From positions 124,001 through 188,000 of IMG/VR virus record IMGVR_UViG_3300025030_000041: 64,000 nt of DNA. The stretch is one strand, 5' to 3'. The position numbers and the translations under genes are program-made. The notes beneath the pieces were generated by a model. It was not told where the DNA came from, did no database searches, and was given only the letters and a program-made list of their open reading frames with translations. Positions 20,276 to 56,469 of the stretch are shown piece by piece; position 1 is the first letter of the stretch, and each line of letters begins with the position of its first letter.

Positions 20276-20281
20276 GTTATA

Positions 20282-24319: not shown

Positions 24320-24375
24320 CTATATAGTATTATTTTTAGTTATTTATTTTATTTATTTATTCAAAAAAAAAACTT

Positions 24376-25011: not shown

Positions 25012-25016
25012 TATTT

Positions 25017-26175: not shown

Positions 26176-26197
26176 ATTTTTATTTTTATTTTTATTT

Positions 26198-26833
26198 TTA
26201 AACATAAACCTTTCCTTTTACATCAATTACTTCTCTTACTTCTTTTTCTGTAAATTTCTTTGTATTATTAGAACAATCAAACCATCCATTAATTGTAGTA
26301 GGAGCTCCTTCAAGACTAGTTAGTTTATTCGTATTACAATCAAAATATCCATTAAATGTAGCAGGAGCTCCTTCAAGACTAGTTATATTATTAATAAAAC
26401 AATAATAACTTCCCTTAGCTATAGTAGGACCCCCTTCAAGACTATTTAACTTATTATTAGAACAATAAAAACCTCCATTAACTGTAGTAGGAGATCCTTC
26501 AAGACTAGTTAAACTATTATTAGAACAATAAAAAAAACCAGTTACTTCGTCTATATCTAGCCCACTCAAATAAGTTATTTCATGTATTCTAACGTTACCT
26601 ATTATAACTTTAATATTCTTAAAGTCTTCTATATTATTTTTAGTTATAAGCATATCTTTATTAAAAGGTTTAGCGACAAATATTTGTTCTTTAGTATAAC
26701 CTTTATTTAGGTAAGGAAGTAACAGGTCATCCCAACGTTCTTTAAGTCTTCTAGGTATAAATATATCTTTAGCACTAAGTTTAGGAGTTTCTTCTTCAGA
26801 TATAAACTGCTCAAAAAGTTTTATATGTTTCAT
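26198..26833 (-). CDS. capsid-targeted LRR protein, paralogue 6 (4 repeats)
   Basis: family core; N- and C-terminal blocks nearly identical to paralogue 5. Confidence 0.85.
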   Translation of the reverse strand: MKHIKLFEQFISEEETPKLSAKDIFIPRRLKERWDDLLLPYLNKGYTKEQIFVAKPFNKDMLITKNNIEDFKNIKVIIGNVRIHEITYLSGLDIDEVTGFFYCSNNSLTSLEGSPTTVNGGFYCSNNKLNSLEGGPTIAKGSYYCFINNITSLEGAPATFNGYFDCNTNKLTSLEGAPTTINGWFDCSNNTKKFTEKEVREVIDVKGKVYV

Positions 26834-27525
26834 TTTAATTCGTCTTGATTTAAATCTAGTACTTTATTAAAATTGTCATTTGATATTAACACAACTTTCA
26901 TAGGCTGGTTATTAGTATATTCTAAGTAATTTAATTTTGGGAATGCTATAAATTTAATATCATTATATTCAAACAAAAATGGGGATTCAATTTGTTCTTT
27001 AAATATATCAGATCCTGATGGTAATGTAATACTAGTTTTTTTAGATTTTACCCCTATATTTTTAGCAAAAAACTCTACAATATTTTTATTTGAAGTTTCA
27101 GTAAATATTAATAGACTATTAATATTCGTTTCTAAAGTTTTTAAAAGACTTGGGAATAATGTATTGTTTAAATAAGTAAAATATTGTTGTTCTTTAAGTA
27201 TATTTTCAGCTTGCTTAATTGATTCATCATCTTTAGTGTCATTCGCAGGCTCAGCTTCATTAATGAATGATAAAAAATCTTTAGTATATTGTTCATCTAT
27301 TTTATAAGTAAACCAGTTTGATTTTTCATTTAATTTAATACCAAATAATGATTTATTATTATAATTTATAGTTGAAATATAAAATTTTTTATTATTTGTT
27401 AGTTCTATTAATCTTATAGATTCTTTATTATTTTCTTTTATTAAAGAAATATTTTTTATTCTATTAGGTAAAATATTATTAGAATATAAAAAATTAGAGA
27501 TTATAGTATTTAATTGTCTTTCCAT
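26830..27525 (-). CDS. hypothetical protein
   Basis: 231-aa ORF coupled by ATGA overlap. Confidence 0.6.
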   Translation of the reverse strand: MERQLNTIISNFLYSNNILPNRIKNISLIKENNKESIRLIELTNNKKFYISTINYNNKSLFGIKLNEKSNWFTYKIDEQYTKDFLSFINEAEPANDTKDDESIKQAENILKEQQYFTYLNNTLFPSLLKTLETNINSLLIFTETSNKNIVEFFAKNIGVKSKKTSITLPSGSDIFKEQIESPFLFEYNDIKFIAFPKLNYLEYTNNQPMKVVLISNDNFNKVLDLNQDELK

Positions 27526-27825: not shown

Positions 27826-28520
27826 GTATAAACTCCACCTTTTACTTTAACAGCGTTTCTCACTTCTTTTTCTGTAAATACTTTACTATTATAAGTAATA
27901 GTAAAATTTCCACCAACAATAGTAGGAGCTCCTTCTAGACTAATTAACATATTATCAGAACAATGAAAATTTCCAGTAACTGTAGTAGGAGCTCCTTCTA
28001 GACTAATTAACATATTATCAGAACAATGAAAATTTTCATTAACTGTAGTAGGAGCTCCTTCTAGACTAGTTAATTTATTATTAAAACAATAAAAATCTCC
28101 ATTAACTATAATAGGGCTTCCTTCAAGACTAGTTAATTTATTATTAAAACAATAAAAATCTCCATTAACTATAATAGGGCTTCCTTCAAGACTAGTTAGC
28201 TTATTATTAGAACAATTAAAATATCCAGTTACTTCTTCTATACCTAGTGCTCTCAGATCAGTTATTTCTTTTATTCTAACACCACCTATTATTACTTTAA
28301 TATTTTTAAAGTCTTCTATATTATCTTTAGTTATAATAATAGGTTCATTAAATGGTTTAGCAACAAGTATTTGTTCTTTGGTATAACCTTTATTTAGGTA
28401 AGGAATGAGCAAATCATCCCATCTTTCTTTAAGCCTCCTAGGTATAAATATATCTTTAGCGCTAGGCTTAGGAGTTTCTTCTTCAGATATGAATTGTTCA
28501 AAAAGTTTTATATATTTCAT
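27822..28520 (-). CDS. capsid-targeted LRR protein, paralogue 7 (5 repeats)
   Basis: family core; two pairs of near-identical 63-bp repeats. Confidence 0.85.
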   Translation of the reverse strand: MKYIKLFEQFISEEETPKPSAKDIFIPRRLKERWDDLLIPYLNKGYTKEQILVAKPFNEPIIITKDNIEDFKNIKVIIGGVRIKEITDLRALGIEEVTGYFNCSNNKLTSLEGSPIIVNGDFYCFNNKLTSLEGSPIIVNGDFYCFNNKLTSLEGAPTTVNENFHCSDNMLISLEGAPTTVTGNFHCSDNMLISLEGAPTIVGGNFTITYNSKVFTEKEVRNAVKVKGGVYT

Positions 28521-32066: not shown

Positions 32067-32094
32067 AAATAAACGATTGATTATCAATTAATTA

Positions 32095-32169
32095 TATTTA
32101 GTTCAAAAATAAAGTACTTAAAAATTTTAATATATCAAACTTATTTCTTATTTTTGTATTAAATATAAC
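32095..32169 (+). promoter_or_regulatory. gene-less promoter module, copy 1 (upstream GTTA deleted)
   Basis: near-identical to 35873-35950 and 56282-56359; TATTTTTG at 32149 fits the Bacteroidota -7 box TAnnTTTG. Confidence 0.65.
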
Positions 32170-32263
32170 GGTTACAGCCTTATTTAGTGTGGGCAAAATT
32201 TTTGTTTTCTTTTTTCTCCTCACAGTTCGTAGTAATGTTGATACGAAGCACGGTTATTGCATG

Positions 32264-32471
32264 TAACGTTTTCGGGCTTGGAGATAGTTTTTAATGCGAT
32301 TTAAACAACAGAAATATGTTAGAAAAGATACAGAAAAAAGTAGAAGACCTTAGAATAAAGGTATATGCTGGACAGAACAACGAAGACACAGAAAAATACT
32401 TATATGACATTGAGCAAATGATATTCAAAGCGATGGACGAAGCATTAAAGATTTCTTCCAAGCCAGTGTTA
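32264..32471 (+). repeat. attC-like hairpin H1 (208 bp, contains start of ORF 32316)
   Basis: TAAC gttttcg GGCTTGGA ... TCCAAGCC agt GTTA. Confidence 0.75.
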
Positions 32472-32564
32472 GCAGATAGTTGCCAACATAATTGGCTGAA
32501 ATCTCATTCAAGGCATATGCTCTATTGTGGGAGCTGCGGTAAATATAAACCCGAAGGCTCTTAG
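32316..32564 (+). CDS. cassette protein crossing the GTTA junction, CxxxW...CxxC C-terminus
   Basis: junction at KPV|LADS; Zn-ribbon-like CQHNW..CGSCG. Confidence 0.65.
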   Translation: MLEKIQKKVEDLRIKVYAGQNNEDTEKYLYDIEQMIFKAMDEALKISSKPVLADSCQHNWLKSHSRHMLYCGSCGKYKPEGS

Positions 32565-32578
32565 TTGGCAATTTCTGC

Positions 32579-32658
32579 TAACGTTTTGCAGATAAGCGAA
32601 GGCACAAATAGCTTTGGCTTTGTGGGGTGGGATTTGGGCTTTTGCTTATGTGCTGTTA
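32579..32658 (+). repeat. attC-like hairpin H2 (80 bp)
   Basis: TAAC gttttgc AGATAAGCGAAGGC ... GCTTTTGCTTATGT gct GTTA. Confidence 0.85.
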
Positions 32659-32733
32659 TGTGTCTGTAAAATTTTTAATAATTATTTTTTGCGTGGGAAT
32701 TAATCAATTTAATCATTTAATAAAAACAACAAA

Positions 32734-33264
32734 ATGGAAACTTTAAACAAATTATTTACCGAACAAGATGTAGAAAATGTATCAGAAAAAATACTTTCAT
32801 CAACTAAACAAAAAATCAAAGACCAAATTGCTGATACCTTTTACGAAGAAATGTCAGATTGTTTGTTTGAACATTACAACAATTTCAAAGACGGAATGAA
32901 AGCCGATTTGCTAAAGGAAATTACAGACCAATATGTAAGCGACCCTGTAAATTATCAATTTAGAGAATTTAGAAATAAGCTATTTGCAGAGAACAAAGAT
33001 GTAATTCTAAAATCATTGACCGACCAAGCAATTTTTGAAACAGTTGAGAGTATCATTTTAGAATATACTCATAAACAACAAACTTTTGGATGGATGTGGA
33101 ATGAGGCTATCGCAAAAATTGTATTAGCAAATTGGGGTAAATTCAAAGATGATGAAAGAATACAAATGTCATTTGGTAGAGAAATTGATAATTTGAAAGG
33201 ACAAATACAAAGACTGCAAGAACGACTAAATGAAGTTTCATCAATAGTAGACGAAAATCATTAA
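32734..33264 (+). CDS. cassette hypothetical protein (helical, C-terminal coiled coil)
   Basis: 176-aa ORF inside module 32655-33315. Confidence 0.7.
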   Translation: METLNKLFTEQDVENVSEKILSSTKQKIKDQIADTFYEEMSDCLFEHYNNFKDGMKADLLKEITDQYVSDPVNYQFREFRNKLFAENKDVILKSLTDQAIFETVESIILEYTHKQQTFGWMWNEAIAKIVLANWGKFKDDERIQMSFGREIDNLKGQIQRLQERLNEVSSIVDENH

Positions 33265-33311
33265 ATCATTTGTGCGGTGGGAAAAATAATTATTAAAAAT
33301 TTTATTGCACA

Positions 33312-33401
33312 TAACGGTTGGGGGTTTGCGATAGTGCCGCTTACCACAAATTCCAATTTCAGCACTAAACTTCATAGCGGCATTTTGCAAACCCTGTGTT
33401 A
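33312..33401 (+). repeat. attC-like hairpin H3 (90 bp)
   Basis: TAAC ggttgg GGGTTTGCGATAGTGCCGCT ... AGCGGCATTTTGCAAACCC tgt GTTA. Confidence 0.85.
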
Positions 33402-33448
33402 TATGAAGTTTTATTTTTTGAAGGGCGGGCAACAAACAAATTATTAAA

Positions 33449-33718
33449 ATGGAAAAATTAACATCAATCAGATTGCAGCCAATGATTAACATCAATAAAC
33501 CCAATATGGATTTGTGGTGTCCGACATTAAATTTTGGAAGAAAGAAAGCAGGTAAATTCAAATTTCCAATAGTATTTAAAAGTATTAAACCTGCTGAAAA
33601 ACTTTACGATGAACTCCAAAATTTAATTGGCAAATCATTGGACGAAGTGAAAGCTGCATCTGAACCGCTTTATGATAAATACAAGAAGTACGATTATCGG
33701 GTGGGTGGTAAAAAATAA
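33449..33718 (+). CDS. cassette hypothetical protein
   Basis: 89-aa ORF in module 33398-33731. Confidence 0.65.
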   Translation: MEKLTSIRLQPMININKPNMDLWCPTLNFGRKKAGKFKFPIVFKSIKPAEKLYDELQNLIGKSLDEVKAASEPLYDKYKKYDYRVGGKK

Positions 33719-33727
33719 AATTTCCTA

Positions 33728-33841
33728 TAACGGTTTGGTATAAACGCAGTGTTTAACTAAACTTAATTTGAAATACAAAACTTAAAATTATGATAAAGAC
33801 ATTGATTGAAAAACTGGAAACATTACGTTTATACTTTGTTA
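33728..33841 (+). repeat. attC-like hairpin H4 (114 bp, contains start of ORF 33790)
   Basis: TAAC ggtttg GTATAAACGCAGTGTTT ... AAACATTACGTTTATAC ttt GTTA. Confidence 0.85.
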
Positions 33842-33996
33842 GTAAACGCTGTTTTAAAGTAACTTATAAAAGTAAATTGAATGGTAATATAGGAACAATT
33901 GGATATTATGGTAAATCAATTGATGGTGTTAAGAAAAAGTTTCAAAAAGAATTTGAAAATTCAATTATTTTAGACGTTTCTTACAATGTTTACTAA
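33790..33996 (+). CDS. cassette protein crossing the GTTA junction
   Basis: LRLYFV|SKR; stop codon is the TAA of the next TAAC. Confidence 0.65.
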   Translation: MIKTLIEKLETLRLYFVSKRCFKVTYKSKLNGNIGTIGYYGKSIDGVKKKFQKEFENSIILDVSYNVY

Positions 33997-34365
33997 CGTT
34001 ATCGGGCTTGGCGAAGGGCGATTATTAACCGAGAATGTTACTACGAAGAACTAAACAAAAATTTAATAAATAAAAAAAGCGATGGAAATAGATGTAAAAA
34101 AACTGATGCCAGAAGTAACAGATAATCATTTTGAAACGATAGACTTGTTACTTAAAGCAAACCAAGAAATAATTGAAGCATTACATATTATGCAATCCAG
34201 CATTGACAATTGGGATGATGCAGAATGTATGCAAATCAATAAAGACAGAATGATAAAATACTTTAATAGATTTAGTAAGGAGGTGTAGGCTTTTTATTTA
34301 TTAAATTTTTGAACCGAAATGATAATACGAAGCGATAAACTAAGCCTTTTGCCAAGCCTGTGTTA
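33994..34365 (+). repeat. attC-like hairpin H5 (372 bp, encloses ORF 34082-34288)
   Basis: TAAC gttatcg GGCTTGGCGAAGGGC ... GCCTTTTGCCAAGCC tgt GTTA. Confidence 0.8.
34082..34288 (+). CDS. hypothetical protein inside hairpin loop
   Basis: 68-aa ORF with A-rich leader. Confidence 0.6.
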   Translation: MEIDVKKLMPEVTDNHFETIDLLLKANQEIIEALHIMQSSIDNWDDAECMQINKDRMIKYFNRFSKEV

Positions 34366-34404
34366 TAAGGCGAAGCGAACCGTTGGCTTTTCGCCAATGG
34401 CTTA

Positions 34405-34533
34405 TAACGGTTTGCAGGTTTATTCAGTTGCGACTTTAAAAACGAAAAATTATGATAACAGAAAAACAATACTTAAAAGCGAAAAAGTTAATTGCAGACT
34501 ACGAAAGCCAGCAATTGAATAAACATGTTGTTA
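34405..34533 (+). repeat. attC-like hairpin H6 (129 bp, contains start of ORF 34452)
   Basis: TAAC ggtttgc AGGTTTATTCAGTTGC ... GCAATTGAATAAACAT gtt GTTA. Confidence 0.85.
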
Positions 34534-34622
34534 TAAGCAGTAAGCCGACCTCAAAAAAGAAGAAGGTGATTATAGATGCAGATAAATTTTCAAAGATGTG
34601 TGATGTTATTAAACGGATATAG
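34452..34622 (+). CDS. 56-aa cassette protein crossing the GTTA junction (not in ORF track)
   Basis: own translation MITEKQYLKAKKLIADYESQQLNKHVV|ISSKPTSKKKKVIIDADKFSKMCDVIKRI. Confidence 0.6.
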   Translation: MITEKQYLKAKKLIADYESQQLNKHVVISSKPTSKKKKVIIDADKFSKMCDVIKRI

Positions 34623-34634
34623 GCTTATTGCTGC

Positions 34635-34758
34635 TAACGGCTACAAACATGCTTAGTGCCTAATTAAATAGTAATTAACAATCAAAATAGTAGAATTATG
34701 AAAATAGCAAAAATGTTCAAAACTGCACTACAACAGGCATTAAGTATGTTTGTTGTTA
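34635..34758 (+). repeat. attC-like hairpin H7 (124 bp, contains start of ORF 34698)
   Basis: TAAC ggctac AAACATGCTTAGTGCCT ... AGGCATTAAGTATGTTT gtt GTTA. Confidence 0.85.
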
Positions 34759-34958
34759 GCAACCATGTTTACTGGGTTTTCCGTAAATTCAAACGACTTG
34801 AAACAATGGAAACTGCACCTGAAACATGGTTAATTGATGTGGATTTTGCAATCCATTTTGTAGAGCCATTTAAAAGTTATAAAGAGGCAAAGAAAGCAGT
34901 TGACTTTGCAAAACATTTACAACCTTGGCAAGAGTTTGTCATCTTACATGGTTGCTAA
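34698..34958 (+). CDS. cassette protein crossing the GTTA junction
   Basis: ALSMFVV|SNH; stop codon is the TAA of the next TAAT core. Confidence 0.65.
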   Translation: MKIAKMFKTALQQALSMFVVSNHVYWVFRKFKRLETMETAPETWLIDVDFAIHFVEPFKSYKEAKKAVDFAKHLQPWQEFVILHGC

Positions 34959-35045
34959 TGGTTGAGTGTATGAGTAGTGTGGCTTTGCACATACTTTCAA
35001 CTTACAGATAAACTTATTTAGCCACATTACTTATACACTTTGTTA
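34956..35045 (+). repeat. attC-like hairpin H8 (90 bp, TAAT core)
   Basis: TAAT ggttga GTGTATGAGTAGTGTGGCT ... AGCCACATTACTTATACAC ttt GTTA. Confidence 0.85.
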
Positions 35046-35067
35046 TAGGTATGTAAAATTTACGGAT

Positions 35068-35292
35068 ATGAAATTTATAAAAAAACAATTACTTAGAAGT
35101 ATAAACTTTGTTAAACGCTATTGGGAATTTATCGTTGTAGAATTTGCCGAAGATTTGGATTTAACTTGGTTTGGTAAATGGTTTTTAAGAACAATGATGT
35201 TTGGTTTATTTATGTGTTATATTCCAATAGTAATTGTTTTTATGCCACTATGGTTAATTATATTCAAATACGATGAAAGTTTAGGAATGTAG
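35068..35292 (+). CDS. cassette membrane protein (one TM)
   Basis: hydrophobic MMFGLFMCYIPIVIVFMPLWLIIF. Confidence 0.6.
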   Translation: MKFIKKQLLRSINFVKRYWEFIVVEFAEDLDLTWFGKWFLRTMMFGLFMCYIPIVIVFMPLWLIIFKYDESLGM

Positions 35293-35312
35293 GTAGTAAA
35301 TTTTATTACCTA

Positions 35313-35400
35313 TAACATTTAGGTGTATGAGAAGGTTTGCTTAGATGAACTTTCAAATTACCGACAATACTTATAGCAAACTTTCTTATACACCTTGTTA
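35313..35400 (+). repeat. attC-like hairpin H9 (88 bp; second copy at 55317)
   Basis: TAAC atttag GTGTATGAGAAGGTTTGCT ... AGCAAACTTTCTTATACAC ctt GTTA. Confidence 0.85.
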
Positions 35401-35460
35401 TAACCAGTACGATAAAATTAGTAGAAACTTAAATTGAAACATAAATAAAATTTTTTAAAT

Positions 35461-35781
35461 ATGAACGAATACAAATTAAAATTATTGGATTACATCTCAA
35501 AAAATTATGAGAATGTGGTAAAATCAGCACAAGGTGGTGAATATATTGAAATAGATTTAATACCAAACAGCCACGATGGATTACACGATTTACCCGAAAT
35601 TTTGGAATGTTGTGAAAAAAACGGAATTGATGTATATATGTTTTTACGTAGTTATCCAATGGATATTGGTGATGGTATTAGAATGGGAAGATATATGTAT
35701 TATATGCAAAAAACCACCAAGGCAATACTGGATGATTTAAAAAATTTTAACACAGAAACTCAAAACGAAGAACAAAAGTAA
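35461..35781 (+). CDS. cassette hypothetical protein
   Basis: 106-aa ORF in module 35397-35794. Confidence 0.65.
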   Translation: MNEYKLKLLDYISKNYENVVKSAQGGEYIEIDLIPNSHDGLHDLPEILECCEKNGIDVYMFLRSYPMDIGDGIRMGRYMYYMQKTTKAILDDLKNFNTETQNEEQK

Positions 35782-35790
35782 TATTGGTTA

Positions 35791-35876
35791 TAACGTTCTG
35801 TAAATATGATTAGTTGAAGAGTACTGTCATTTATAATTTAGTAGATTGATTATCAATTAATTATATTTACTTGTTA
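35791..35876 (+). repeat. attC-like hairpin H10 (86 bp; copies at 56199 and partial at 32075)
   Basis: TAAC gttct GTAAATATGATTAGTTGA ... TCAATTAATTATATTTAC tt GTTA. Confidence 0.85.
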
Positions 35877-35950
35877 TATTTAGTTCAAAAATAAAGTACT
35901 AAACGTGTTAATATATCAAAAATATTTCTTATTTTTGTATTAAATATAAC
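35873..35950 (+). promoter_or_regulatory. gene-less promoter module, copy 2
   Basis: GTTATATTTAGTTCAAAAATAA...TTATTTTTGTATTAAATATAAC; TAnnTTTG at 35930. Confidence 0.7.
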
Positions 35951-36070
35951 GGTTGAGAATATAAGTAGTAACCGATTTGAAACAAAAATGTTAAATTAAC
36001 GTATAATGATATTAAAAGGTAGTAACTTAAATAAACCACATAACTCGGTTATTACTTATATTCTTTGTTA
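35947..36070 (+). repeat. attC-like hairpin H11 (124 bp)
   Basis: TAAC ggttga GAATATAAGTAGTAACCGA ... TCGGTTATTACTTATATTC ttt GTTA. Confidence 0.85.
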
Positions 36071-36097
36071 TGTGTATGTAAAAATAAATTTATACCA

Positions 36098-36373
36098 ATG
36101 AAAAAAGAAATTAAAATAGGTGACAAGACGTTTGAATTTGAGAGTCCAAACATCTTAGATAAATCAACAACAGATATGATGAATGACTGGTGTAGATTAG
36201 TAGAACAACAAAAGAGTGATGAAGATGTTTGGACGGTGATACCTGAACTACCAGAATACAAATTCAAAAATCTTAAAATAGAGAGTAGTCCGTTTGAAAC
36301 AACAGAAGAAACTACTGAAATGACAGTAACTTTTAAGTATGATGATTTTGAATTTGATGATAAAAACTCATAA
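36098..36373 (+). CDS. cassette acidic hypothetical protein
   Basis: ATG at 36098 in module 36067-36395. Confidence 0.65.
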   Translation: MKKEIKIGDKTFEFESPNILDKSTTDMMNDWCRLVEQQKSDEDVWTVIPELPEYKFKNLKIESSPFETTEETTEMTVTFKYDDFEFDDKNS

Positions 36374-36391
36374 ATTTATTTTTATTACACA

Positions 36392-36474
36392 TAACGGTTG
36401 AGGGTTTATGCAGTTAAATTTTTACCAATAAAAAATAGAAATGAAAAAATTTTATTGCATTAAACCCTGTGTTA
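36392..36474 (+). repeat. attC-like hairpin H12 (83 bp)
   Basis: TAAC ggttga GGGTTTATGCAGTTAAATTTTT ... AAAAATTTTATTGCATTAAACCC tgt GTTA. Confidence 0.85.
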
Positions 36475-36552
36475 GCCGTCTGTATTTTTTAAACATTATT
36501 TTTTTAGGGAGGCATTTAATTAATCAATTTAATCATTAATAAAAACAAAAAA

Positions 36553-37110
36553 ATGGAACAAGTAAAAAAAGCATACGAAGAAATATTCAAAGCGTTAAAG
36601 AAACACAAGGACATTTGCGTTTTTGATGTAGAAGATTTGGAAAGAAAATCAAAAGTTCATCTTTTCGGGCTTACATTAAAAGAGGAATATGGCTTAAACA
36701 TAGACCCGAAGCAAGTTCAGGCGGTAAACTATTTTAAACCATCAGACCATACTTGGATTGGATGGTATGGCGAAAAGCATAATCGAACAATAAGCTGGAG
36801 CGTTGATGGCAGACAGCCCGAAGATGAACTTTTATTGCAAATCGGATTTCCAACAGGGGCTTATATTTTTGGCGAAGATTATGCAACCGATTTCTTTCAA
36901 AAGTTTTGGTTGGAATTGAAAACATACAAGCCCGATTATATTGATGAAGCGAACTGTTGCTTGTATTGGAACATCAAAAACGCAAAAGAGATTTTCAATT
37001 CATATAACGCTTTGCTAAAAAAATATTACGAACTAAATAAAGAGGATGCGAAACAAAGACTAATTGATAAAATGAAAAAGGAATTGGAGCAGTTAGAAAA
37101 ATCATCTTAA
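36553..37110 (+). CDS. cassette hypothetical protein
   Basis: 185-aa ORF in module 36471-37159; ISWSVDGRQP, FPTGAYIFG motifs. Confidence 0.7.
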   Translation: MEQVKKAYEEIFKALKKHKDICVFDVEDLERKSKVHLFGLTLKEEYGLNIDPKQVQAVNYFKPSDHTWIGWYGEKHNRTISWSVDGRQPEDELLLQIGFPTGAYIFGEDYATDFFQKFWLELKTYKPDYIDEANCCLYWNIKNAKEIFNSYNALLKKYYELNKEDAKQRLIDKMKKELEQLEKSS

Positions 37111-37283
37111 TCATTGGAGCGTTGGCAAAAAATAATGTTTAAAAAATATTGCGGCTAACTATTATATATATACAAGTATGCTTAATATATTGAATATGAA
37201 TACTAAATTCGATTGCATTATCAGACAATTTAAAAAAACTCAGATAACCCCTTAATACACATCAAATAAAACAATTTAAACTT

Positions 37284-37484: not shown

Positions 37485-37693
37485 GTCAAGACCAAATTAA
37501 TGAAGTCTTAAATCATGCAAAAGATATGATAAGACAACACCCAGAATACAGATGGGGCCAATCTGTATTTAATTCACTATGCCAGTTTTACCCAGACACA
37601 GCTAATGCAATCCGCACAACTGAAAATGATCCGTATTATAATGATGGTATAGTTGACCAGTGTATTAATTTTATAAAAGAAAAAGAGGATTAA
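37469..37693 (+). CDS. small phage protein
   Basis: YRWGQSVFN...DPYY motif. Confidence 0.6.
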   Translation: MFKKLSQDQINEVLNHAKDMIRQHPEYRWGQSVFNSLCQFYPDTANAIRTTENDPYYNDGIVDQCINFIKEKED

Positions 37694-37716
37694 AAATTTA
37701 ATTTTAATCCTCTTTT
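37681..37716. terminator. bidirectional intrinsic terminator between convergent genes
   Basis: AAAAGAGGATTAAAA-ATTTAA-TTTTAATCCTCTTTT. Confidence 0.75.
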
Positions 37717-37735
37717 CTTATTTTAAATTATTAAT

Positions 37736-40647: not shown

Positions 40648-41094
40648 TTAAGTATAGACATCACCTTTTACATCAATTAATTTTCGTACTTCTTCTTCTG
40701 TAAATTTCTTCTTATTATTATTACTAAAAAAATTTCCATTAACTATTTTAGGAGCGCCTTCTAGACTAATTAAGTTATTATAAGAACAACTAAAATATCC
40801 AACTACTTCTTCTATATTTAGCTCTCTTAAATCGTTTATTTCCTTTATTTTAGCATTACCTATTAAAACCGTAATATTCTTAAAATCTTTCATATTATCT
40901 TTAGTTATAATAAAAGTGTCATTAATGGGTTTCACTACAAATATTTGTTCTTTGGTATAACCTTTATTAAGGTAAGGAAGTAATAAGTCATCCCATCTTT
41001 CTTTAAGCCTCCTAGGTATAAATATATCTTTAGCGCTAAGCTTAGGAGTTTCTTCTTCGGATATAAATTGTTCAAATAGTTTTATGTGTTTCAT
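40648..41094 (-). CDS. capsid-targeted LRR protein, paralogue 8 (1 repeat)
   Basis: minimal member with intact N- and C-caps. Confidence 0.85.
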   Translation of the reverse strand: MKHIKLFEQFISEEETPKLSAKDIFIPRRLKERWDDLLLPYLNKGYTKEQIFVVKPINDTFIITKDNMKDFKNITVLIGNAKIKEINDLRELNIEEVVGYFSCSYNNLISLEGAPKIVNGNFFSNNNKKKFTEEEVRKLIDVKGDVYT

Positions 41095-43191
41095 TTATCT
41101 AATCCTGTCAGTTCTAAAAGTTAAATTTTGTATAGTACTATCTATACAAATTATATCAAAAATTGGTTTATATAAAAATAAGGTAGAACCTGCGAAGTCT
41201 GCATCACTAAATATGTCTATTACGTCTATGTAGTTATTTGTAGAATTTGTTAATAATTTAATACTAAACGTGTTTGGAACAATTTCATCATTAAAAATTA
41301 GTCTAAATACTTGGCCGTTTTTCCATTTATTTTTAGAATCGTCTATTATAATTTCAACATCTCCATTTAATACTATTCTAGTACCAGAGTTAACATGTCT
41401 TAAGTAGTTAGTAAATTGTTTTAATTCTATTGTTGTTACATTTATAATATTTACTTCTGGAGAATTTGATAAATTATAATTTTGTACAGTATTAGTTATT
41501 CCAATTTTATTCGGAACATTTTTATCAATTGAAATTCCATCACCGTTTTTTATTGCGTCTATATTATACGAAACTTGGATAGACGTTTTATTATTATAAA
41601 TATTACTAATTTCATCATAATTTTTATTAATTAAACTCATTATAGTTTCGGTATTATCAAATAATGCTTGGTTTGAATTTAATGAATCCTCTATTGTTTT
41701 AAGTCTAGTATCTATTGAAGTAGTCACAGCAGAATCTATTATTAATGATTTTAAATCTGTAATTTCATTTTTTATATTAACAATTTCACTAATATTATCT
41801 CCATAAATTCTAGTTAAATCTTTAAATTGAGTAAGAACATCAGTGTAAAGGTCTAATGAAAATGTAGAATAATCATTAATACTTTTTTCTATAAATACAG
41901 TATCAATAGATGTATCAAATTTAAAATTAGCTTTAAATGCATATGATGTTCCATTAGTATTATTAATAGGGTCTGGCCGATATTTCATTAAAGTTGGAAT
42001 TTTAAAATTAATTCCAGATTGTTCAGGTTTATTTAAAAATAAAATACCATATAAATTAGTAGAAGTATCAGCTGGATTATTTTGATCAAATACATCATAA
42101 TATATTAATACAGCATTAAATTCAAAAGATTTACTTCCAGCGTCATCAGCTAATTGGCTTAAAGATTTAATTGATAAATTTTGTGAAGCTAATGTATAAT
42201 CATTTAATGTAAAATCCAAAGATATACCGTCTAAAGTAGACCTCTTATATTCTACCGTAGTAGATCCTTTTATTTTTCTTATTTTTTCAGTTAATGCACT
42301 ATGAAAATTAGTTATGGAATCAGTAAAATATGAATTATTAGTTTGATTTGGTGAATGCCAATATCTTTCTTCCCATTGAGATAACTGGTAATTATATATT
42401 TCTTGTGTTACACTTCTATCATCAATATCAAAAAATGATTTAATAGATAATCCGTATGGATGAGTATCAAAATAATTTCTTCCAACTAAATATTCAGTAT
42501 TTAATGGATTATCAGGAATATTAGTTAAATTCATTCCAGGTGCATAATTCTCGTCTTCTACTGAATCAAATAATACATAAGGCGTATTACCAACGGAGGT
42601 AGGAGTATGAATATATACCTCAGTATACGCATTTTTAGAATGTTTAACACTATTAACAACATCTATATCTGCAATATATCGTACAACTTTTTTATAATTT
42701 GATGGAGTATTAGTATTACTTAATAGGTGTTCATCTTCTTCAACAAATAAATCTTTAACATTTGTAATTGAATTTTCAAATGGAGTAGCTTTTCTAAATC
42801 GCATAACCCCTAATTCTTTAAGCCATTTCCAAAATACTCTTTCACTTACATTTCTTTTTAATTCTCTATTATAAGCACTCCTACTTGTAATTAAACTTTC
42901 TAAGTTTAAACAATAATTTTGAAATGACTCACTTAAATTAATAGATTGGTCAGTATTTACTCCTTCTATTAATGGGGTTTCTCCTAATACATTAAATTGT
43001 AAAAAATTTTGGTTAGTTTCAGCGTCATTTATTTTACCTATTTCTGGGATACGTAATAATGCAAATTTGCTAAATACAAACTTATTTCCTGTATTATTTG
43101 CAGTAGTCGTTAAGTCTTCAATTGAAGACGGAAATGAATAAAAAATACCCTCGCTGCTTTTTATTGGTTTTATAAATGGAGTTGTTGCCAT
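41095..43191 (-). CDS. large putative virion structural protein
   Basis: 698 aa beside sheath gene; FVFSKFALLRIP, ERVFWKWLKE, AYTEVYIH motifs; coiled-coil segment. Confidence 0.55.
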   Translation of the reverse strand: MATTPFIKPIKSSEGIFYSFPSSIEDLTTTANNTGNKFVFSKFALLRIPEIGKINDAETNQNFLQFNVLGETPLIEGVNTDQSINLSESFQNYCLNLESLITSRSAYNRELKRNVSERVFWKWLKELGVMRFRKATPFENSITNVKDLFVEEDEHLLSNTNTPSNYKKVVRYIADIDVVNSVKHSKNAYTEVYIHTPTSVGNTPYVLFDSVEDENYAPGMNLTNIPDNPLNTEYLVGRNYFDTHPYGLSIKSFFDIDDRSVTQEIYNYQLSQWEERYWHSPNQTNNSYFTDSITNFHSALTEKIRKIKGSTTVEYKRSTLDGISLDFTLNDYTLASQNLSIKSLSQLADDAGSKSFEFNAVLIYYDVFDQNNPADTSTNLYGILFLNKPEQSGINFKIPTLMKYRPDPINNTNGTSYAFKANFKFDTSIDTVFIEKSINDYSTFSLDLYTDVLTQFKDLTRIYGDNISEIVNIKNEITDLKSLIIDSAVTTSIDTRLKTIEDSLNSNQALFDNTETIMSLINKNYDEISNIYNNKTSIQVSYNIDAIKNGDGISIDKNVPNKIGITNTVQNYNLSNSPEVNIINVTTIELKQFTNYLRHVNSGTRIVLNGDVEIIIDDSKNKWKNGQVFRLIFNDEIVPNTFSIKLLTNSTNNYIDVIDIFSDADFAGSTLFLYKPIFDIICIDSTIQNLTFRTDRIR

Positions 43192-43233: not shown

Positions 43234-43749
43234 TTAATAATTAATAATTCCAGCTTTAGTATCAATTGCATGTTTTATTTCTTTTTGTAAAAACTTTTTG
43301 CCTCTATTTTGGGATATGATAACATCATCTGTAACTAATTTAGGAGCTCCTTCTAGACTAGTTAATGCATTAAAAGTACTAATGAATCTGCCATTTACTA
43401 TTTTAGGACTACCTTTACGATTAGTTAAATTATTGCTAGAACAATTAAAATCTCCAAGCACCTCATCTATATCTATATCCCATTTATTCATATCGCCGTT
43501 TATATAAACTAAACCAACTATAATTTTAATATCTTTAAAATCTTTTACATTATTATCATTTATAATAACTTCATCTCTAAGAGATTTAGCAACTACTATT
43601 TGTTCTTTTGTATAACCTTTATTAAGGTAAGGGATAAGAAGGTCATCCCATCTTTCTTTAAGTCTTCTAGGTATAAATATATTTTTACGACTAAGTTTAG
43701 GTATGTCTTCTTCAGATATAAACTGTTCAAATAATTTAATACGTCTCAT
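43234..43749 (-). CDS. capsid-targeted LRR protein, paralogue 9 (2 repeats, divergent)
   Basis: MRRIKLFEQFISEE plus family core. Confidence 0.8.
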   Translation of the reverse strand: MRRIKLFEQFISEEDIPKLSRKNIFIPRRLKERWDDLLIPYLNKGYTKEQIVVAKSLRDEVIINDNNVKDFKDIKIIVGLVYINGDMNKWDIDIDEVLGDFNCSSNNLTNRKGSPKIVNGRFISTFNALTSLEGAPKLVTDDVIISQNRGKKFLQKEIKHAIDTKAGIINY

Positions 43750-43798
43750 TATTTTTATTTATATAAAAATTAAAAAAAAATATGATTTGCTCCTTGAA

Positions 43799-44296
43799 TT
43801 AAAAATTAAAATCTTTTGCAATTTTAGTTATATTGTTATCTAATTCAGTTAGGTCACACTCTTTAGATTTTAATATATAAAAATCCAAATTAAAAAATTG
43901 TAATGGCTTATGTGTATACTTTAAAGATGACCTGTATTTTTTAACAATTTTATAACAAAACCTATCATAAAAAAGTCTTCTAGTTTTAGATTCGTCTAAT
44001 GCACAAAAAATAAAAGACTCTGGCTGTATTTCTTCTATAAATTGAATGGCTGCTGAATCGATAGTAGGAATAGATAAAAAAGCTTTTTTAGGATCATTTA
44101 ACAACTTAAATTCTCCATTTGCTTTAAACTTAAATAACCAGTGGTTTTGTAAAGTTGAATAGTTTGTGATAGCTATATCATATTTAATATCATCTATTTT
44201 AAATACTCCTATCCATTCGCTTTGCGATTTATTCCAATTTATTAATAACGGATTTTTTAATCCTTCTATAATAAATTTTTGAAAATTTTTAAACAT
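43799..44296 (-). CDS. capsid-targeted protein (intact relative of pseudogene at 2232/3897)
   Basis: MFKNFQKFIIE; RRLFYDRF motif. Confidence 0.65.
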   Translation of the reverse strand: MFKNFQKFIIEGLKNPLLINWNKSQSEWIGVFKIDDIKYDIAITNYSTLQNHWLFKFKANGEFKLLNDPKKAFLSIPTIDSAAIQFIEEIQPESFIFCALDESKTRRLFYDRFCYKIVKKYRSSLKYTHKPLQFFNLDFYILKSKECDLTELDNNITKIAKDFNF

Positions 44297-44993
44297 AAAC
44301 TTCTCCTTTTATATCAATAACATGTCTTACTTCTTTTTCTGTAAATTTCTTTAAATTATTGCTTATATTAAAATCTCCTCTTATTATAGAGGGTGTCCCT
44401 TCAAGGCTAGTTAATCTATTATAAGAACAATCAAAAAAGCCATTAACTATAACGGGACCACCATCTAAACTAGTTAAGATATTATTAGAACAATTAAAGT
44501 TACCTCCTATTGTGGAAAGGCATCCTTCAAGACTAGTTAACTTATTATTAGAGCATGAGAAATTTCCATTAACTGATACAGGACTTCCTTCTAAACTAGT
44601 TAAGTTATTATTAGAACAACTAAAATACCCATTAACTATAGTAGGACCGCCTTCTAAACTAGTTAGTTTATTTAACTTATTTAAGTAACAATCAAAATTT
44701 CCTGATATTTCATCTACCCTTAATACTCTCAAATCATTTATTCCTCGTATTATAGCATTACCTATTATAACTTTAATATTCTTAAAGTCTTTTATATTAT
44801 TTTTAGTTATACTAATAACTTCATTAAAGGGTTTAGTTACAAATATTTGGTCTTTTGTATAACCTTTATTTAGATATGGAATACACAAAGAATCTCGTCT
44901 TTCTTTAAGTGGTATAAATATATCTTTGACACTATAATTATGATTCTTAAATTTATTAGATGCATTACAGTCTAATAGACTATGATATTTCAT
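44289..44993 (-). CDS. LRR protein, paralogue 10 (5 repeats; targeting peptide replaced)
   Basis: family core from KDIFIP onward, unrelated first ~20 aa. Confidence 0.8.
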   Translation of the reverse strand: MKYHSLLDCNASNKFKNHNYSVKDIFIPLKERRDSLCIPYLNKGYTKDQIFVTKPFNEVISITKNNIKDFKNIKVIIGNAIIRGINDLRVLRVDEISGNFDCYLNKLNKLTSLEGGPTIVNGYFSCSNNNLTSLEGSPVSVNGNFSCSNNKLTSLEGCLSTIGGNFNCSNNILTSLDGGPVIVNGFFDCSYNRLTSLEGTPSIIRGDFNISNNLKKFTEKEVRHVIDIKGEVYV

Positions 44994-44995
44994 TT

Positions 44996-50540: not shown

Positions 50541-50548
50541 TTATTATC

Positions 50549-51004: not shown

Positions 51005-51101
51005 TTAGTTTATTTATTTTCTTTTTAAAATTATCTTTTAAAAATTTATTTATTTTAAAATCTATTTTCAAATAAATAATAAGAAAATATTGTATATAAA
51101 A

Positions 51102-55046: not shown

Positions 55047-55309
55047 ATGCAAACGAAAATTTGGATAACATATAAGCCTGATATTGACAAATTTCGGGAA
55101 TGGGATATTATGATGCCAACTCATTGGATAAAACTTCCTGATAATCCGAAAGAGTATTATTTTTTAGTTTATTAATAGAAACAAAAGAAGGAACAATGAA
55201 AGTATGTCGGGATGATTGGATTATCAAAGAACCATTTCAAACAGGCAATATATATATTTATCCTTGTAAAGACGATATTTTTCAAAGTACCTACTACGTC
55301 GTCTTATAA
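55047..55309 (+). pseudogene. two overlapping truncated gene remnants
   Basis: PTHWIKLPDNP (DUF551-like C-terminus) and TKEGTM...DWIIKE...YPCKDDIF.STY, in different frames, both lacking N-termini. Confidence 0.55.
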
Positions 55310-55316
55310 TTGGTAG

Positions 55317-55393
55317 TAATGATTTAGTGTATGAGAAGGATTGCTTAGATGAACTACCAAATTAACTACAGTTGTTGATAGCAAACTTTCTTG
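55317..55393 (+). repeat. truncated copy of hairpin H9
   Basis: GTGTATGAGAAGGATTGCTTAGATGAACT...AGCAAACTTTCTT, with terminal ATACAC..GTTA missing. Confidence 0.75.
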
Positions 55394-55414
55394 TAAAATT
55401 TAACTTTTTGAGCT

Positions 55415-55598: not shown

Positions 55599-55722
55599 TA
55601 ACAGTTGGGGGTATATGTAGTGCGAGATTTTAAACACTAAACTTGACTTAACCCCAGAACTTAATTAGAAGTAGAAATGTTGAATAAATCGCTGAACCTC
55701 ACATTACATATACACCTTGTTA
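55599..55722 (+). repeat. attC-like hairpin H13 (124 bp)
   Basis: TAAC agttg GGGGTATATGTAGTGCGAG ... CTCACATTACATATACACC tt GTTA. Confidence 0.85.
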
Positions 55723-56185: not shown

Positions 56186-56198
56186 AAAATATTGTGTA

Positions 56199-56285
56199 TA
56201 ATGCCCCGTAAATATAATTTAGTTAAAGAGTACTGTCATTTATAATTTAGTAGATTGATTATCAATTAATTATATTTACCTGTTA
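56199..56285 (+). repeat. attC-like hairpin H14 (copy of H10)
   Basis: TAAT gcccc GTAAATATAATTTAGTT ... ATCAATTAATTATATTTAC ct GTTA; loop nearly identical to H10. Confidence 0.85.
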
Positions 56286-56359
56286 TATTTAGTTCAAAAA
56301 TAAAGTACTAAAAATGTTAATATATCAAAAACATTTCTTATTTTTGTATTAAATATAAT
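56282..56359 (+). promoter_or_regulatory. gene-less promoter module, copy 3 (no downstream + strand gene)
   Basis: near-identical to copy 2; TAnnTTTG at 56339. Confidence 0.7.
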
Positions 56360-56469
56360 ATATATATATTCAATTAACGTTATCATATTGATTATTAATA
56401 TATTTAGTTAAAAATATTTAAAGATTCATTTTAAAACTTTAAAAATAGAGACTGTCTTATTTAACCTAC

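Follow-up and report, generated by a model that had tools for sequence, protein, structure and literature searches.

Positions 32,075 to 37,159 of a 64,000-nucleotide stretch of a large Bacteroidota phage (IMG/VR record IMGVR_UViG_3300025030_000041, positions 124,001 to 188,000; this whole stretch is referred to as the window) hold small co-oriented open reading frames (ORFs) separated by twelve conserved DNA hairpins, and a second, smaller array lies at 55,307 to 56,360 (Table 1). Contigs used for comparison are designated by L numbers. The initial annotation had described the locus as an integron-like cassette array in a jumbo phage, with an invariant junction code and no integrase in view. 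To determine if the hairpins could be recovered independently, the window was scanned for TAAY...TGTTA pairs with complementary arms. Exactly 12 hairpins of 80 to 372 nt, all on the + strand, were recovered from the main array, along with a thirteenth in array 2, and the observation was thereby confirmed.

Table 1. Features of the hairpin arrays and their boundaries (window coordinates)
Position	Strand	Feature	Observations
32075..32165	+	Copy 1 of a ~95-nt repeat	Remnant of a 35791-type 3' arm, an inverse (GTTAT...ATAAC) palindrome and a Bacteroidetes-type -7 box (TAnnTTTG at 32149); marks the array start just after the helicase stop at 32066
32166..32263	+	Orphan 5' core	ATT-N5-TAACGGTT with AG at positions 21-22; no matching 3' arm
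32264..32471	+	Hairpin 1	208 nt, long-range pairing; encloses the start of ORF 32316-32564
32579..32658	+	Hairpin 2	80 nt; same allele at about 90% identity in L040 and L111
32734..33264	+	Cassette ORF	176 aa, no family hit; preceded by a T-run, a GGGNGG box and an A-rich leader
33312..33401	+	Hairpin 3	90 nt
33449..33718	+	Cassette ORF	89 aa
33728..33841	+	Hairpin 4	114 nt; loop carries a leader, the ATG at 33790 and 17 codons; 90-94% identical to copies in LR756500.1 and L004 (two copies), where the flanks are unrelated
33790..33996	+	Cassette ORF	68 aa; starts inside hairpin 4 and stops on the TAA of the next TAAC core
33994..34365	+	Hairpin 5	372 nt, long-range pairing of 17 bp with three G.T pairs; encloses the whole ORF 34082-34288
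34366..34404	+	ORF-less module between two cores	With both cores (34355-34415), 100% identical in L083, where the flanking hairpins are different
34405..34533	+	Hairpin 6	129 nt; encloses the start of ORF 34452-34622
34635..34758	+	Hairpin 7	124 nt; best covariance-model hit; encloses the ATG at 34698
34698..34958	+	Cassette ORF	86 aa; stops on the TAA of the TAAT core of hairpin 8
34956..35045	+	Hairpin 8	90 nt; same allele at 96.5% identity in L099
35068..35292	+	Cassette ORF	74 aa, with hydrophobic stretches
35313..35400	+	Hairpin 9	88 nt; allele at 86-94% identity in L044 (three copies), L065, L118, L132 and L141; decayed paralogue at 55307-55412
35461..35781	+	Cassette ORF	106 aa; with its leader 90% identical in L083, the homology ending at the TAACG core
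35791..35876	+	Hairpin 10	86 nt; paralogue at 56189-56295
35877..35946	+	ORF-less module	Equal to copy 2 of the 95-nt repeat; forms an inverse palindrome and carries TAnnTTTG at 35930
35947..36070	+	Hairpin 11	124 nt
36098..36373	+	Cassette ORF	91 aa
36392..36474	+	Hairpin 12	83 nt
36553..37110	+	Cassette ORF	185 aa; member of a large uncharacterised family (more than 350 homologues); found in five different neighbourhoods, three of them flanked by hairpins of this family
37140..37151	+	Last module end	ATT-N5-TAAC; not followed by a recognisable hairpin
37680..37717	.	Bidirectional intrinsic terminator	Canonical, GC-containing stem plus T-runs, at the convergent boundary with the sheath gene; form differs from the TAAC-GTTA hairpins
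55307..55412	+	Array 2, decayed copy of hairpin 9	Both cores lost
55599..55722	+	Array 2, intact hairpin	124 nt; followed by a GGGTTGG box, an A-rich leader and ORF 55773-56003
56189..56360	+	Array 2, paralogue of hairpin 10 plus copy 3 of the 95-nt repeat	92% identical to 35780-35949; at the end of the + strand gene cluster

The junction code was likewise reproduced. ATK at positions -8 to -6 before TAAC was present in 20 of 20 hairpins examined (13 from the window and 7 from LR756500.1), and the pattern ATKN5TAACGKT occurred 13 times in the window against 0.58 expected, with 0 of 100 shuffles reaching 13; ten of those 13 lay within 32158-36398, all on the + strand. A covariance model built from the hairpins hit the window only on the + strand and only in 32569-36484 and 55307-56295. 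As single-stranded DNA, the six hairpins tested folded with z-scores of -2.3 to -6.3. Two of the twelve (hairpins 1 and 5) are long-range pairings, however, and three others (hairpins 4, 6 and 7) enclose a start codon. As the initial annotation had stated, two ORFs stop on the TAA of a core. No integrase, transposase or HUH domain was found in window ORFs of 120 aa or more, nor was there a tblastn hit in the window to the recombinases found in association with these hairpins elsewhere.

To determine whether the hairpins constitute one structured family, members were aligned and tested for covariation. RNAalifold found 22 pairs, 15 of them with compensatory changes. In 48 hairpins from 7 contigs, 94.6% of pair cells were paired compared to 67.4% in shuffles (0 of 500 reached the observed value), the covariation score was 0.661 against 0.183, and slid controls gave 34-46%. 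Each element has a conserved base helix, in which TAAC(G) is paired with (T)GTTA and closed by a G.T pair, followed by an asymmetric unpaired spacer of 4-5 nt on the 5' side and 1-3 nt on the 3' side and then by a stem of 17 bp or more, whose sequence covaries freely but which keeps a wobble or mismatch at two fixed positions. The loop ranges from 11 nt to about 300 nt and can hold a leader plus start codon or a whole ORF.

The initial annotation had proposed a phage-borne platform in a jumbo phage. The family is not specific to this phage, nor to jumbo phages, since it is spread through small and large Bacteroidota phages and through Bacteroidota chromosomes. Arrays occur in other huge phages, in LR756500.1 and contigs L004, L009 and L014, and in the cultured Polaribacter phage P12002L. 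A pattern for the short-loop subfamily hit at least 120 IMG/VR viral contigs and at least 120 genome contigs, mostly Bacteroidota; own arms were complementary in 60-91% of those hits, against 5-13% for mismatched arms. Some chromosomal arrays carry one hairpin per gene: in Fluviicola one hairpin follows nearly every one of about 15 co-oriented genes, and in Flavivirga the array carries immunity and toxin-antitoxin genes behind two Xer/IntI-like recombinase fragments. In L060, a full-length SAM_4 plus integrase recombinase is followed by co-oriented genes with hairpin cores between them, identified there as TAACG cores mapped on the - strand and not with the covariance model. On the other hand, no recombinase is annotated in P12002L, and LR756500.1 has no close homologue of the hairpin-associated recombinase family at E <= 1e-20. 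That family is also the ordinary integrase of flavophages such as Freya, whose integrase region has no hairpins, so the association may be partly incidental.

We next compared related loci to locate the points at which homology begins and ends. Hairpin 4 is shared by three phages whose helicases have only 29% amino acid identity, and its flanks are unrelated from ATAAC to TGTTAG. The 185-aa gene module is shared by L014, L021 and L022 from exactly GCTGTTAT to exactly TATAACGT, with unrelated hairpins on both sides. L083, a related contig, carries two window modules, at 90% and 100% identity, in reversed order and with nothing else shared, and hairpin alleles recur at 85-98% identity with unrelated cargo. 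These comparisons showed that ORF modules (GTTA...TAAC) and hairpins (TAAC...GTTA) are exchanged separately, with breakpoints exactly at both cores. Cassette-like shuffling is therefore real, and the hairpins mark the exact points at which genes are swapped, like an integron but not a canonical one.

We considered the possibility that the hairpins are instead nonautonomous mobile palindromes of the MITE, REP or RPE type, copied or inserted by an unidentified transposase or nuclease into permissive sites at gene ends, such that the cassette appearance would be a by-product of their accumulation in nonessential regions. Hairpin-only units are 90-98% identical in otherwise unrelated phages and at several sites in one genome (three copies in L014, three in L044 and two in L004), and an identical 47-nt hairpin occurs in Flavivirga jejuensis and in an unrelated Flavobacteriales MAG with different flanks. 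Moreover, singletons lie in tight intergenic gaps of ordinary chromosomal genes, divergent intergenic regions are avoided (1 case against 7 convergent), and MITEs shared between Flavobacterium and its phages are documented (PMC11602168). However, no target-site duplication was discernible, most stems differ through compensatory change rather than being recent copies, ORF modules move as units bounded by the same cores, arrays have strictly uniform polarity with about one hairpin per gene, and no DDE or HUH transposase was found in the window. This reading appears unlikely.

The elements resemble integron attC sites in having invariant AAC/GTT triplets, an imperfect palindrome with an unpaired spacer, a stem with fixed irregularities, a variable loop and a stop codon in the inverse core. 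Indeed, one family member, P12002L_attC1, had already been called an attC by HattCI, and other phage-borne predicted attCs with ATAAC...TTGTTAT ends were recombined by IntI1 (PMC9892861, Table S3). Nevertheless, a canonical cassette array (CALIN) recombined by an integron integrase (IntI) encoded elsewhere in the phage or by the host is very unlikely. The GTTRRRY/RYYYAAC consensus is not met, the fifth base being T in most cases and 0 of 12 window hairpins fitting. An ORF does not keep its downstream hairpin, because both cores are junctions, and exchange at both cores is not what the integron mechanism produces. P12002L_attC1, the only family member tested with IntI1, was the one site of six that did not recombine with it (PMC9892861). 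Hairpins are also sense to genes in phages and antisense in chromosomes. Complete integrons are almost absent from Bacteroidetes, one having been found, in Salinibacter ruber (bioRxiv 2022.02.28.482270), and recombinases found near hairpins score far below the integron-integrase cutoffs (51.7-68 bits against 265).

The strongest alternative, although still unlikely, is that the hairpins are purely regulatory RNA punctuation like the PeSLs (PMC2839356; PMC4122927), i.e., sense-strand structures that attenuate, terminate, insulate or are processed between cistrons, often followed by a promoter-like box and an A-rich leader, with mosaicism arising only from relaxed or short-homology recombination between these conserved motifs in coinfecting phages. 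Hairpins are on the coding strand in 121 of 123 classifiable viral hits. Two G.U pairs are near-invariant (42 of 48 and 36 of 43), and outside the three wobble-rich columns (those two plus 28/175) G.T outnumbers A.C by 29 to 11. The + strand, which is the sense strand, was more stable in 6 of 6 hairpins tested; conserved G.U pairs and this greater stability fit an RNA role at least as well as a DNA role. In hairpin orientation, 46-62% have a T-run a few nucleotides downstream, against 12-25% with an A-run upstream, and downstream boxes recur (xTGTA, a T-run ending in G, GGGNGG and an A-rich leader). Some loops hold a leader plus AUG, and ERF, Rad52 and YqaJ recombination genes occur in related contigs. 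By contrast, on large chromosomal contigs 10 of 11 hairpins are antisense to the flanking genes, and genome loci split 52 opposite to 48 same. The phage's own canonical terminator looks different, sigma-70 promoter-like sites are not enriched (33 found, 33.1 expected), and several hairpins sit only about 20-30 nt before the next ATG, which leaves no room for a promoter. Finally, exchanges have no flanking homology beyond 5-to-9-nt cores, which is short for homologous recombination, and crossovers inside stems would give hybrid hairpins, which are not seen.

Together, these results favor, tentatively and with a probability of roughly 45%, a reading in which the region is a hyperplastic array of small accessory ORFs whose boundaries are set by members of a Bacteroidota-wide family of attC-like palindromic junction elements, here called TAAC-GTTA hairpins. 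The architecture of the elements, their occurrence in many phages and in host chromosomes, the inheritance of modules and hairpins as separate units with breakpoints at the two cores, and the differing module order between related contigs were established directly by the analysis. What is inferred, from sequence comparison alone, is that the cores are the crossover points of a site- or structure-specific recombination reaction on folded or extruded hairpins, and that this reaction is carried out in trans, because the window encodes no recombinase; the likeliest enzyme would be a Xer/IntI-like tyrosine recombinase of the kind found at the head of some chromosomal arrays. The phage array would therefore be the recombinase-less (CALIN-like) form of an integron analogue. 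The interpretation in the initial annotation, a site-specific gene capture and shuffling platform related to but distinct from canonical attC arrays, is thus supported only in part: the array, its junction code, the exchangeable cassettes and the lack of a recombinase in the window held up, but the platform is not specifically a jumbo-phage one, several defining integron features fail, and an RNA-level role for the sense-oriented hairpins is not excluded. It is also inferred that, because the hairpins lie in sense orientation in phages, they are transcribed as G.U-stabilized RNA stems that punctuate the polycistronic message by attenuation, processing or insulation ahead of promoter-like boxes, which would explain why phages keep them in sense orientation and chromosomal arrays keep them antisense. 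The closest precedents are phage "CALINs" (Qi 2023), Bacteroidales rAID arrays (Ross 2019) and T4 PeSLs.

To determine whether the proposed array is present, we scanned the 64-kb window, which is 26% G+C, for TAAY...TGTTA pairs with complementary arms. The window encodes a T4-type large terminase, topoisomerase II subunits, a sheath-like protein and proteins with Por_Secre_tail and SprB domains, and it is therefore part of a large myovirus (246-kb contig) of a Bacteroidota host. Between a helicase gene and a convergent sheath gene lies a run of small + strand ORFs, and here the scan recovered exactly the twelve hairpins (80 to 372 nt) that the initial annotation had described, plus one further hairpin outside this run. 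The 5' flank carried ATK at -8..-6 in 20 of 20 hairpins examined. The motif ATKN5TAACGKT occurred 13 times against 0.58 expected, with ten of those sites in the array on the + strand, and two ORFs stopped on the TAA of the core. The description of modules running GTTA...TAAY was likewise accurate; the ATK-N5 motif belongs to the module end, which often also forms a small hairpin of its own. The observation made in the initial annotation stands. Two other approaches added little: a hairpin census with loose mismatch rules was too noisy in this AT-rich DNA to be useful, and a fixed-spacing TAAY-N16-AGK motif was not enriched across the window. Rfam searches, at gathering thresholds and in permissive mode, found no family for the hairpins and returned only a tRNA-Asn and a chance miRNA hit, and searches of Pfam and PHROGs returned no function for the cassette ORFs.

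To determine whether the hairpins form a single family, seventeen hairpins from the window and from LR756500.1 (462 kb), the only GenBank phage with a DNA hit to a hairpin, were aligned at both ends. RNAalifold predicted 22 pairs, 15 of them with compensatory double changes. A covariance model built from these hairpins then collected 48 members from seven contigs. In these members, 94.6% of pair cells were standard pairs, compared to 67.4% in shuffles (0 of 500 reached the observed value) and 34 to 46% in slid registers, and the covariation score was 0.661 against 0.183. The AAC and GTT triplets were invariant (48 of 48). Invariant or nearly so were the base helix U-A, A-U, A-U, C-G, a closing G.U (42 of 48), a UAU/AUA block in the stem and a second G.U thirteen pairs into the stem (36 of 43); where this second G.U was missing, a small internal loop (TCG/TG) took its place. 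One subfamily had a conserved apical loop, TCGTTTTAATG, on stems of unrelated sequence. Mismatches that would be wobbles on the + strand outnumbered those that would be wobbles on the - strand by 45 to 9 in the first set and, outside the conserved columns, by 29 to 11 in the larger set. Folded as DNA, the + strand was the more stable in 6 of 6 hairpins, but both strands folded.

The covariance model hit the window only in the two small-ORF clusters and only on the coding strand. Similar arrays were found in several other places. LR756500.1 has 14 hairpins in 4.5 kb; it comes from the same sample as the phage of the window, yet the two helicases share only 29% amino acid identity. Further arrays lie in a 154/223-kb contig (L004/L007), a 21-kb contig (L009) and a 250-to-300-kb freshwater phage (L014 to L017; 13 hairpins), and the cultured siphovirus Polaribacter phage P12002L has five hits on the coding strand of its early region. 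A pattern for the short-loop subfamily, expected roughly 4 to 26 times by chance in the genome collection on our estimate from base composition, found at least 120 genome contigs and at least 120 viral contigs. The two arms, which the pattern does not constrain, were complementary in 60 to 91% of hits, against 5 to 13% for mismatched arms. The genome hits were almost all in Bacteroidota (Flavobacteriales, Cytophagales, Bacteroidales, Chitinophagales and Saprospiraceae), with one Ignavibacterium hit outside the phylum, and included isolates (Flavivirga jejuensis, Aquimarina macrocephali and Marinilabilia salmonicolor) and a complete Fluviicola chromosome. Several short contigs in non-Bacteroidota MAGs, namely L044 and L065 (binned as Methanolobus sp.), L083 (binned as Gammaproteobacteria) and L048/L051 (Magasanikbacteria), are packed with these hairpins (13 to 14 in 5.5 kb) and look like misbinned Bacteroidota phage fragments.

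Coordinates of features in the window and in related loci
Feature	Sequence	Coordinates	Description
Repeat of ~640 bp	Window	5958-6610, 8587-9230, 17754-18403, 19802-20301, 24374-25012, 26196-26834, 27887-28231, 40712-41096, 43342-43758, 44417-44934, 62935-63580	At least eleven copies on both strands, 75-89% nucleotide identity
tRNA-Asn (GTT) gene	Window	10098-10171	Apart from the chance miRNA match, the only Rfam or ARAGORN hit in the window
Helicase gene, end	Window	32066	
Repeat of ~95 nt	Window	32075-32165, 35848-35946, 56254-56360	Inverse (GTTAT...ATAAC) palindrome between two hairpin cores with a Bacteroidetes-type TAnnTTTG box; the third copy lies at the end of a gene cluster with nothing downstream on its strand
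TAnnTTTG boxes, + strand	Window	32149, 32609, 34745, 35930, 36864	Only 32149 and 35930 lie in the promoter-like 95-nt repeat
ATKN5TAACGKT sites (ten of 13)	Window	32158-36398	+ strand
114-nt hairpin	Window	33728-33841	
114-nt hairpin allele	L001	10002-10115	
114-nt hairpin allele	L004	994-1107 and 1266-1380	
ORF-less module	Window	34355-34415	100% identical in L083
Module of ORF 35461	Window		90% identical in L083
185-aa ORF	Window	36553-37110	Member of a family of more than 350 proteins
Intrinsic terminator	Window	37680-37717	Perfect and bidirectional, between the converging accessory cluster and the sheath-like gene
ORFs with Por_Secre_tail, SprB and PKD hits in Pfam	Window	Among 43234-62832	
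Additional hairpin	Window	55599-55722	
Duplicated recombinase C-terminal fragment with about 90 nt upstream	L143 (Flavivirga jejuensis)	1758-1845 and 3112-3198	96% amino acid identity, next to an IS-type DDE transposase gene

Four independent comparisons showed that the two cores are homology breakpoints. First, the 114-nt hairpin is 90 to 94% identical in the phage of the window, in LR756500.1 and twice in L004, with identity starting at ATAAC and ending at TGTTAG and unrelated sequence on both sides. This allele acts as a portable gene start, as its loop supplies a leader, the ATG and the same 17-residue N terminus (MIK(R/T)LIEKL(K/E)TLRLYFV) to four different ORF bodies in three phages, and at least two of those ORFs end on the TAA of the next core. 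Second, the module of the 185-aa ORF is shared by L014 and by two further contigs, L021 and L022, from exactly GCTGTTAT to exactly TATAACGT, while the hairpins on either side are unrelated and all other array genes differ. Third, L083 shares only two pieces with the window, the module of ORF 35461 and an ORF-less module, which lie in the opposite order, and homology again ends at TAACG. Fourth, individual hairpin alleles recur at 85 to 98% identity in several contigs, and several times within one array, with unrelated cargo. Identical module order everywhere, which had been set beforehand as an outcome that would count against shuffling, was therefore not observed. Searches for related loci with the helicase and with the 185-aa ORF returned only the phage of the window itself, so that no close relative entered a synteny comparison, and L014 to L017 and L018 to L020 are 100% identical across samples and thus say nothing about array stability.

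We next compared the array with integron attC sites and CALINs, including the phage-borne CALINs of Qi et al. 2023 (PMC9892861), who reported attC clusters without an integrase in virulent phages, P12002L among them. As in those systems, small, co-oriented, unrelated ORFs are separated by imperfect palindromes with conserved AAC...GTT ends, an unpaired spacer, a stem with fixed irregularities and a variable loop, a stop codon can lie in the inverse core, and the array has no integrase. The primer table of that study shows that P12002L_attC1 fits the short-loop subfamily pattern used here; it was the one site of six that gave no verified recombinants with IntI1. However, the extended R-box consensus (RYYYAAC and GTTRRRY) does not hold, because the window cores read GTTAT(G/A)N or GTTAG(C/T)N and 0 of 12 fit RRRY. 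Nor does the array fit a cassette made of an ORF plus its own downstream attC with crossover only at the 3' core (G|TT), since homology breaks at both cores and the hairpin is not tied to either neighboring ORF. In attC sites the bottom strand, antisense to the ORFs, is the folded substrate and carries extrahelical bases; here strand preference pointed both ways, the better-pairing strand being the sense strand in phages and antisense in large chromosomal contigs, while the fixed irregularities are mismatch or wobble (G.T/A.C) positions rather than bulged bases. A conserved apical loop exists in one subfamily. No tyrosine recombinase was found in the 64-kb window, and recombinases near hairpins elsewhere scored 51.7 to 68 bits against TIGR02249, the cutoff of which is 265. 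The hosts are Bacteroidota, in which integrons are almost absent (bioRxiv 2022.02.28.482270). A canonical integron therefore appears very unlikely to us, although attC finders flag these elements as CALINs.

The orientation of the hairpins relative to genes differed between phages and hosts. In viral contigs the hairpin lay on the coding strand in 121 classifiable cases and on the other strand in 2, whereas in genome contigs the split was 49 to 52, and on contigs over 100 kb it was antisense in 10 of 11. Hairpins avoided divergent intergenic regions (1 case against 7 convergent). In hairpin orientation a T-run tended to follow a few nt downstream, far more often than an A-run preceded. We infer that the element is polar at the RNA level and that in hairpin orientation it would act as a G.U-stabilized stem plus a U-rich tail that attenuates transcription. 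In this view, phages, in which many modules carry their own promoter-like boxes, would tolerate or use that orientation, and chromosomal arrays read from one end would keep the hairpins antisense; because both units begin and end with reverse-complementary cores, either could be inverted without changing the junction code.

These features raise the alternative of a purely regulatory role with short-homology exchange, like that of the promoter-early stem-loops (PeSLs) of T4-type phages (PMC2839356, PMC4122927), which are the closest phage analogue in behavior but differ in anatomy. PeSLs are likewise repeated composite motifs in hyperplastic regions immediately next to ORFans, serve as points of exchange between otherwise unrelated sequences, place a stem-loop before promoter-like sequence and a translation start, and have G-T pairs noted in their stems. 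Consistent with this, boundaries of segments shared between contigs fell at the elements, next to cargo ORFs without Pfam or PHROG function. PeSLs, however, are defined by a sigma-70 promoter plus a short, often G/C-tract terminator stem, and they exchange by homologous recombination. Here, sigma-70-like sites numbered 33 against 33.1 expected, TAnnTTTG boxes occurred at only five + strand positions in the region, the stems are long, AT-rich and covarying with invariant TAAC/GTTA cores, breakpoints fall at 4-to-5-nt cores, and the same family also sits in host chromosomes. The elements did not match the form of intrinsic terminators either, a short GC-rich stem followed immediately by a U-tract. 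The terminator scan found none of the 12 hairpins and only the bidirectional terminator at the cluster boundary, which shows what an ordinary terminator looks like in this phage, and T-runs began about 5 to 10 nt after the hairpin in only about half of the family. The sigma-70 promoter and terminator scan did not explain the elements, and we regard the purely regulatory reading as less likely than recombination, though it remains the strongest of the alternatives.

The possibility that the hairpins are selfish elements was also considered. REP/BIME elements with RAYT transposases, MITEs such as Correia elements and Rickettsia palindromic elements (RPEs) are short imperfect palindromes repeated through a genome, mostly at gene ends; some are transcribed into mRNA hairpins, and some (RPEs) contribute coding sequence, as the 114-nt hairpin does here. 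They are shared between hosts and their phages, and MITEs shared between Flavobacterium and its phages are documented (PMC11602168). Near-identical hairpin alleles with unrelated flanks do exist. On the other hand, no target-site duplication was visible, no RAYT, HUH or DDE gene was nearby and no transposase was found in the window, and most members differed by compensatory changes, with stems covarying far more than in MITE copies. Furthermore, arrays have uniform polarity with one hairpin per gene, and ORF modules are exchanged at the same cores. With evidence on both sides, a MITE/REP-like origin was considered less likely than the regulatory reading but was not ruled out.

To determine whether a recombinase accompanies the hairpins in hosts, chromosomal arrays were examined. 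In Fluviicola, about 15 co-oriented genes, including those for a beta-lactamase-family protein, LRR proteins, a cation efflux protein and Por_Secre_tail proteins, are nearly all followed by one antisense hairpin, with two further hairpins downstream; no recombinase was found within roughly 4 kb upstream and 10 kb downstream. In Flavivirga jejuensis (locus L143), a hairpin-punctuated array carries a GAD-like/T6SS_Tdi1_C immunity gene, ParDE and others, and follows, in the same orientation, two 111-aa C-terminal fragments of a Xer/IntI-like recombinase. The duplication of this fragment next to an IS-type transposase gene suggests that the recombinase of the array was inactivated by IS activity. 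Five other genome loci hold full-length recombinases (Phage_int_SAM_4 plus Phage_integrase) that are 36 to 48% identical to one another and 35 to 56% identical to the Flavivirga fragments, and in one of them, L060, the recombinase heads four co-oriented genes with hairpin cores between them. Homologues also sit a few kilobases from hairpins in about ten of the viral loci, whereas the Xer-like recombinase inside the L009 array is only distantly related to this family. The same family, however, is the annotated integrase of Cellulophaga and Polaribacter phages. Polaribacter phage Freya_10 had no TAAC-GTTA hairpins near its integrase or in its first 9 kb, and LR756500.1 has no close homologue; the association is therefore suggestive rather than established. 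P12002L has no recombinase annotated. The ten near-identical isolates Freya_1 to Freya_10 (MT732463-MT732472) differ by up to 4.9 kb in genome length, and the integrase sits at different record positions.

The architecture of the Flavivirga and L060 arrays fits that of the rAID-1 (recombinase-associated acquired interbacterial defense) arrays of Bacteroidales (Ross et al. 2019, bioRxiv 10.1101/471110; PMC12247911). Those arrays, also from Bacteroidota, hold short, co-oriented, low-GC genes with "repetitive intergenic sequences reminiscent of integrons" and a Xer-family tyrosine recombinase at the 5' end, and L143 carries immunity-type cargo (GAD-like plus T6SS_Tdi1_C). The array of the window differs in being in a virulent-type large phage, in having no recombinase within the window and in its cargo without assigned function, and hairpin polarity relative to genes is reversed in phages.

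Taken together, our most likely reading, held at a probability of only about 0.45, is that the region is a recombinase-less cassette array of a Bacteroidota-specific, attC-like junction system, in which the cores would be crossover points for a trans-acting, probably Xer/IntI-like, enzyme working on folded hairpins, and the sense-oriented hairpins would double as RNA punctuation in the phage. The analysis demonstrates the structure, the distribution, the two-core junction rule, the reordering and the polarity flip, whereas the enzyme, its recombination at the cores, the strand that reacts and the RNA effect are inferences from sequence. The interpretation in the initial annotation, a phage-borne gene capture and shuffling platform related to but distinct from canonical attC arrays, was partly supported. 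A more far-reaching and doubtful possibility, which the data nevertheless allow, is that Bacteroidota and their phages, including jumbo phages, share an integron analogue of their own with TAAC-GTTA hairpins as its recombination sites. Both cores would be crossover points, so that genes and hairpins would reassort independently and modules could sit in either polarity, and a SAM_4-type Xer/IntI-like recombinase family, present in host arrays and temperate flavophages, would act in trans, giving virulent phages access to a common cassette pool with their hosts. If the cores are true recombination sites, there would be a second, phylum-specific solution to gene-cassette capture alongside integrons, in a phylum where integrons are almost absent, bridging host chromosomes with both small and huge phages, and this would explain how hyperplastic ORFan regions of Bacteroidota phages are built. 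The covariance model would also give a sequence handle for finding accessory, counterdefense and immunity cargo in metagenomes, and the hairpin could supply the missing "intergenic repeat" of rAID-type arrays. Even if the RNA reading were correct, the family would be a widespread, unnamed cis element of Bacteroidota gene expression with a striking phage-versus-host polarity rule.

The ~640-bp segment repeated through the window was checked as a possible mobility enzyme. It corresponds to ORFs of about 190 to 300 aa with weak LRR-like Pfam hits and is LRR-like, not a nuclease or recombinase, which makes it a large paralogous gene family inside one phage genome. Other phage ORFs carry a type IX secretion C-terminal sorting domain, SprB repeats and PKD domains, which point to a Flavobacteriia-type host and possibly to host-surface mimicry.
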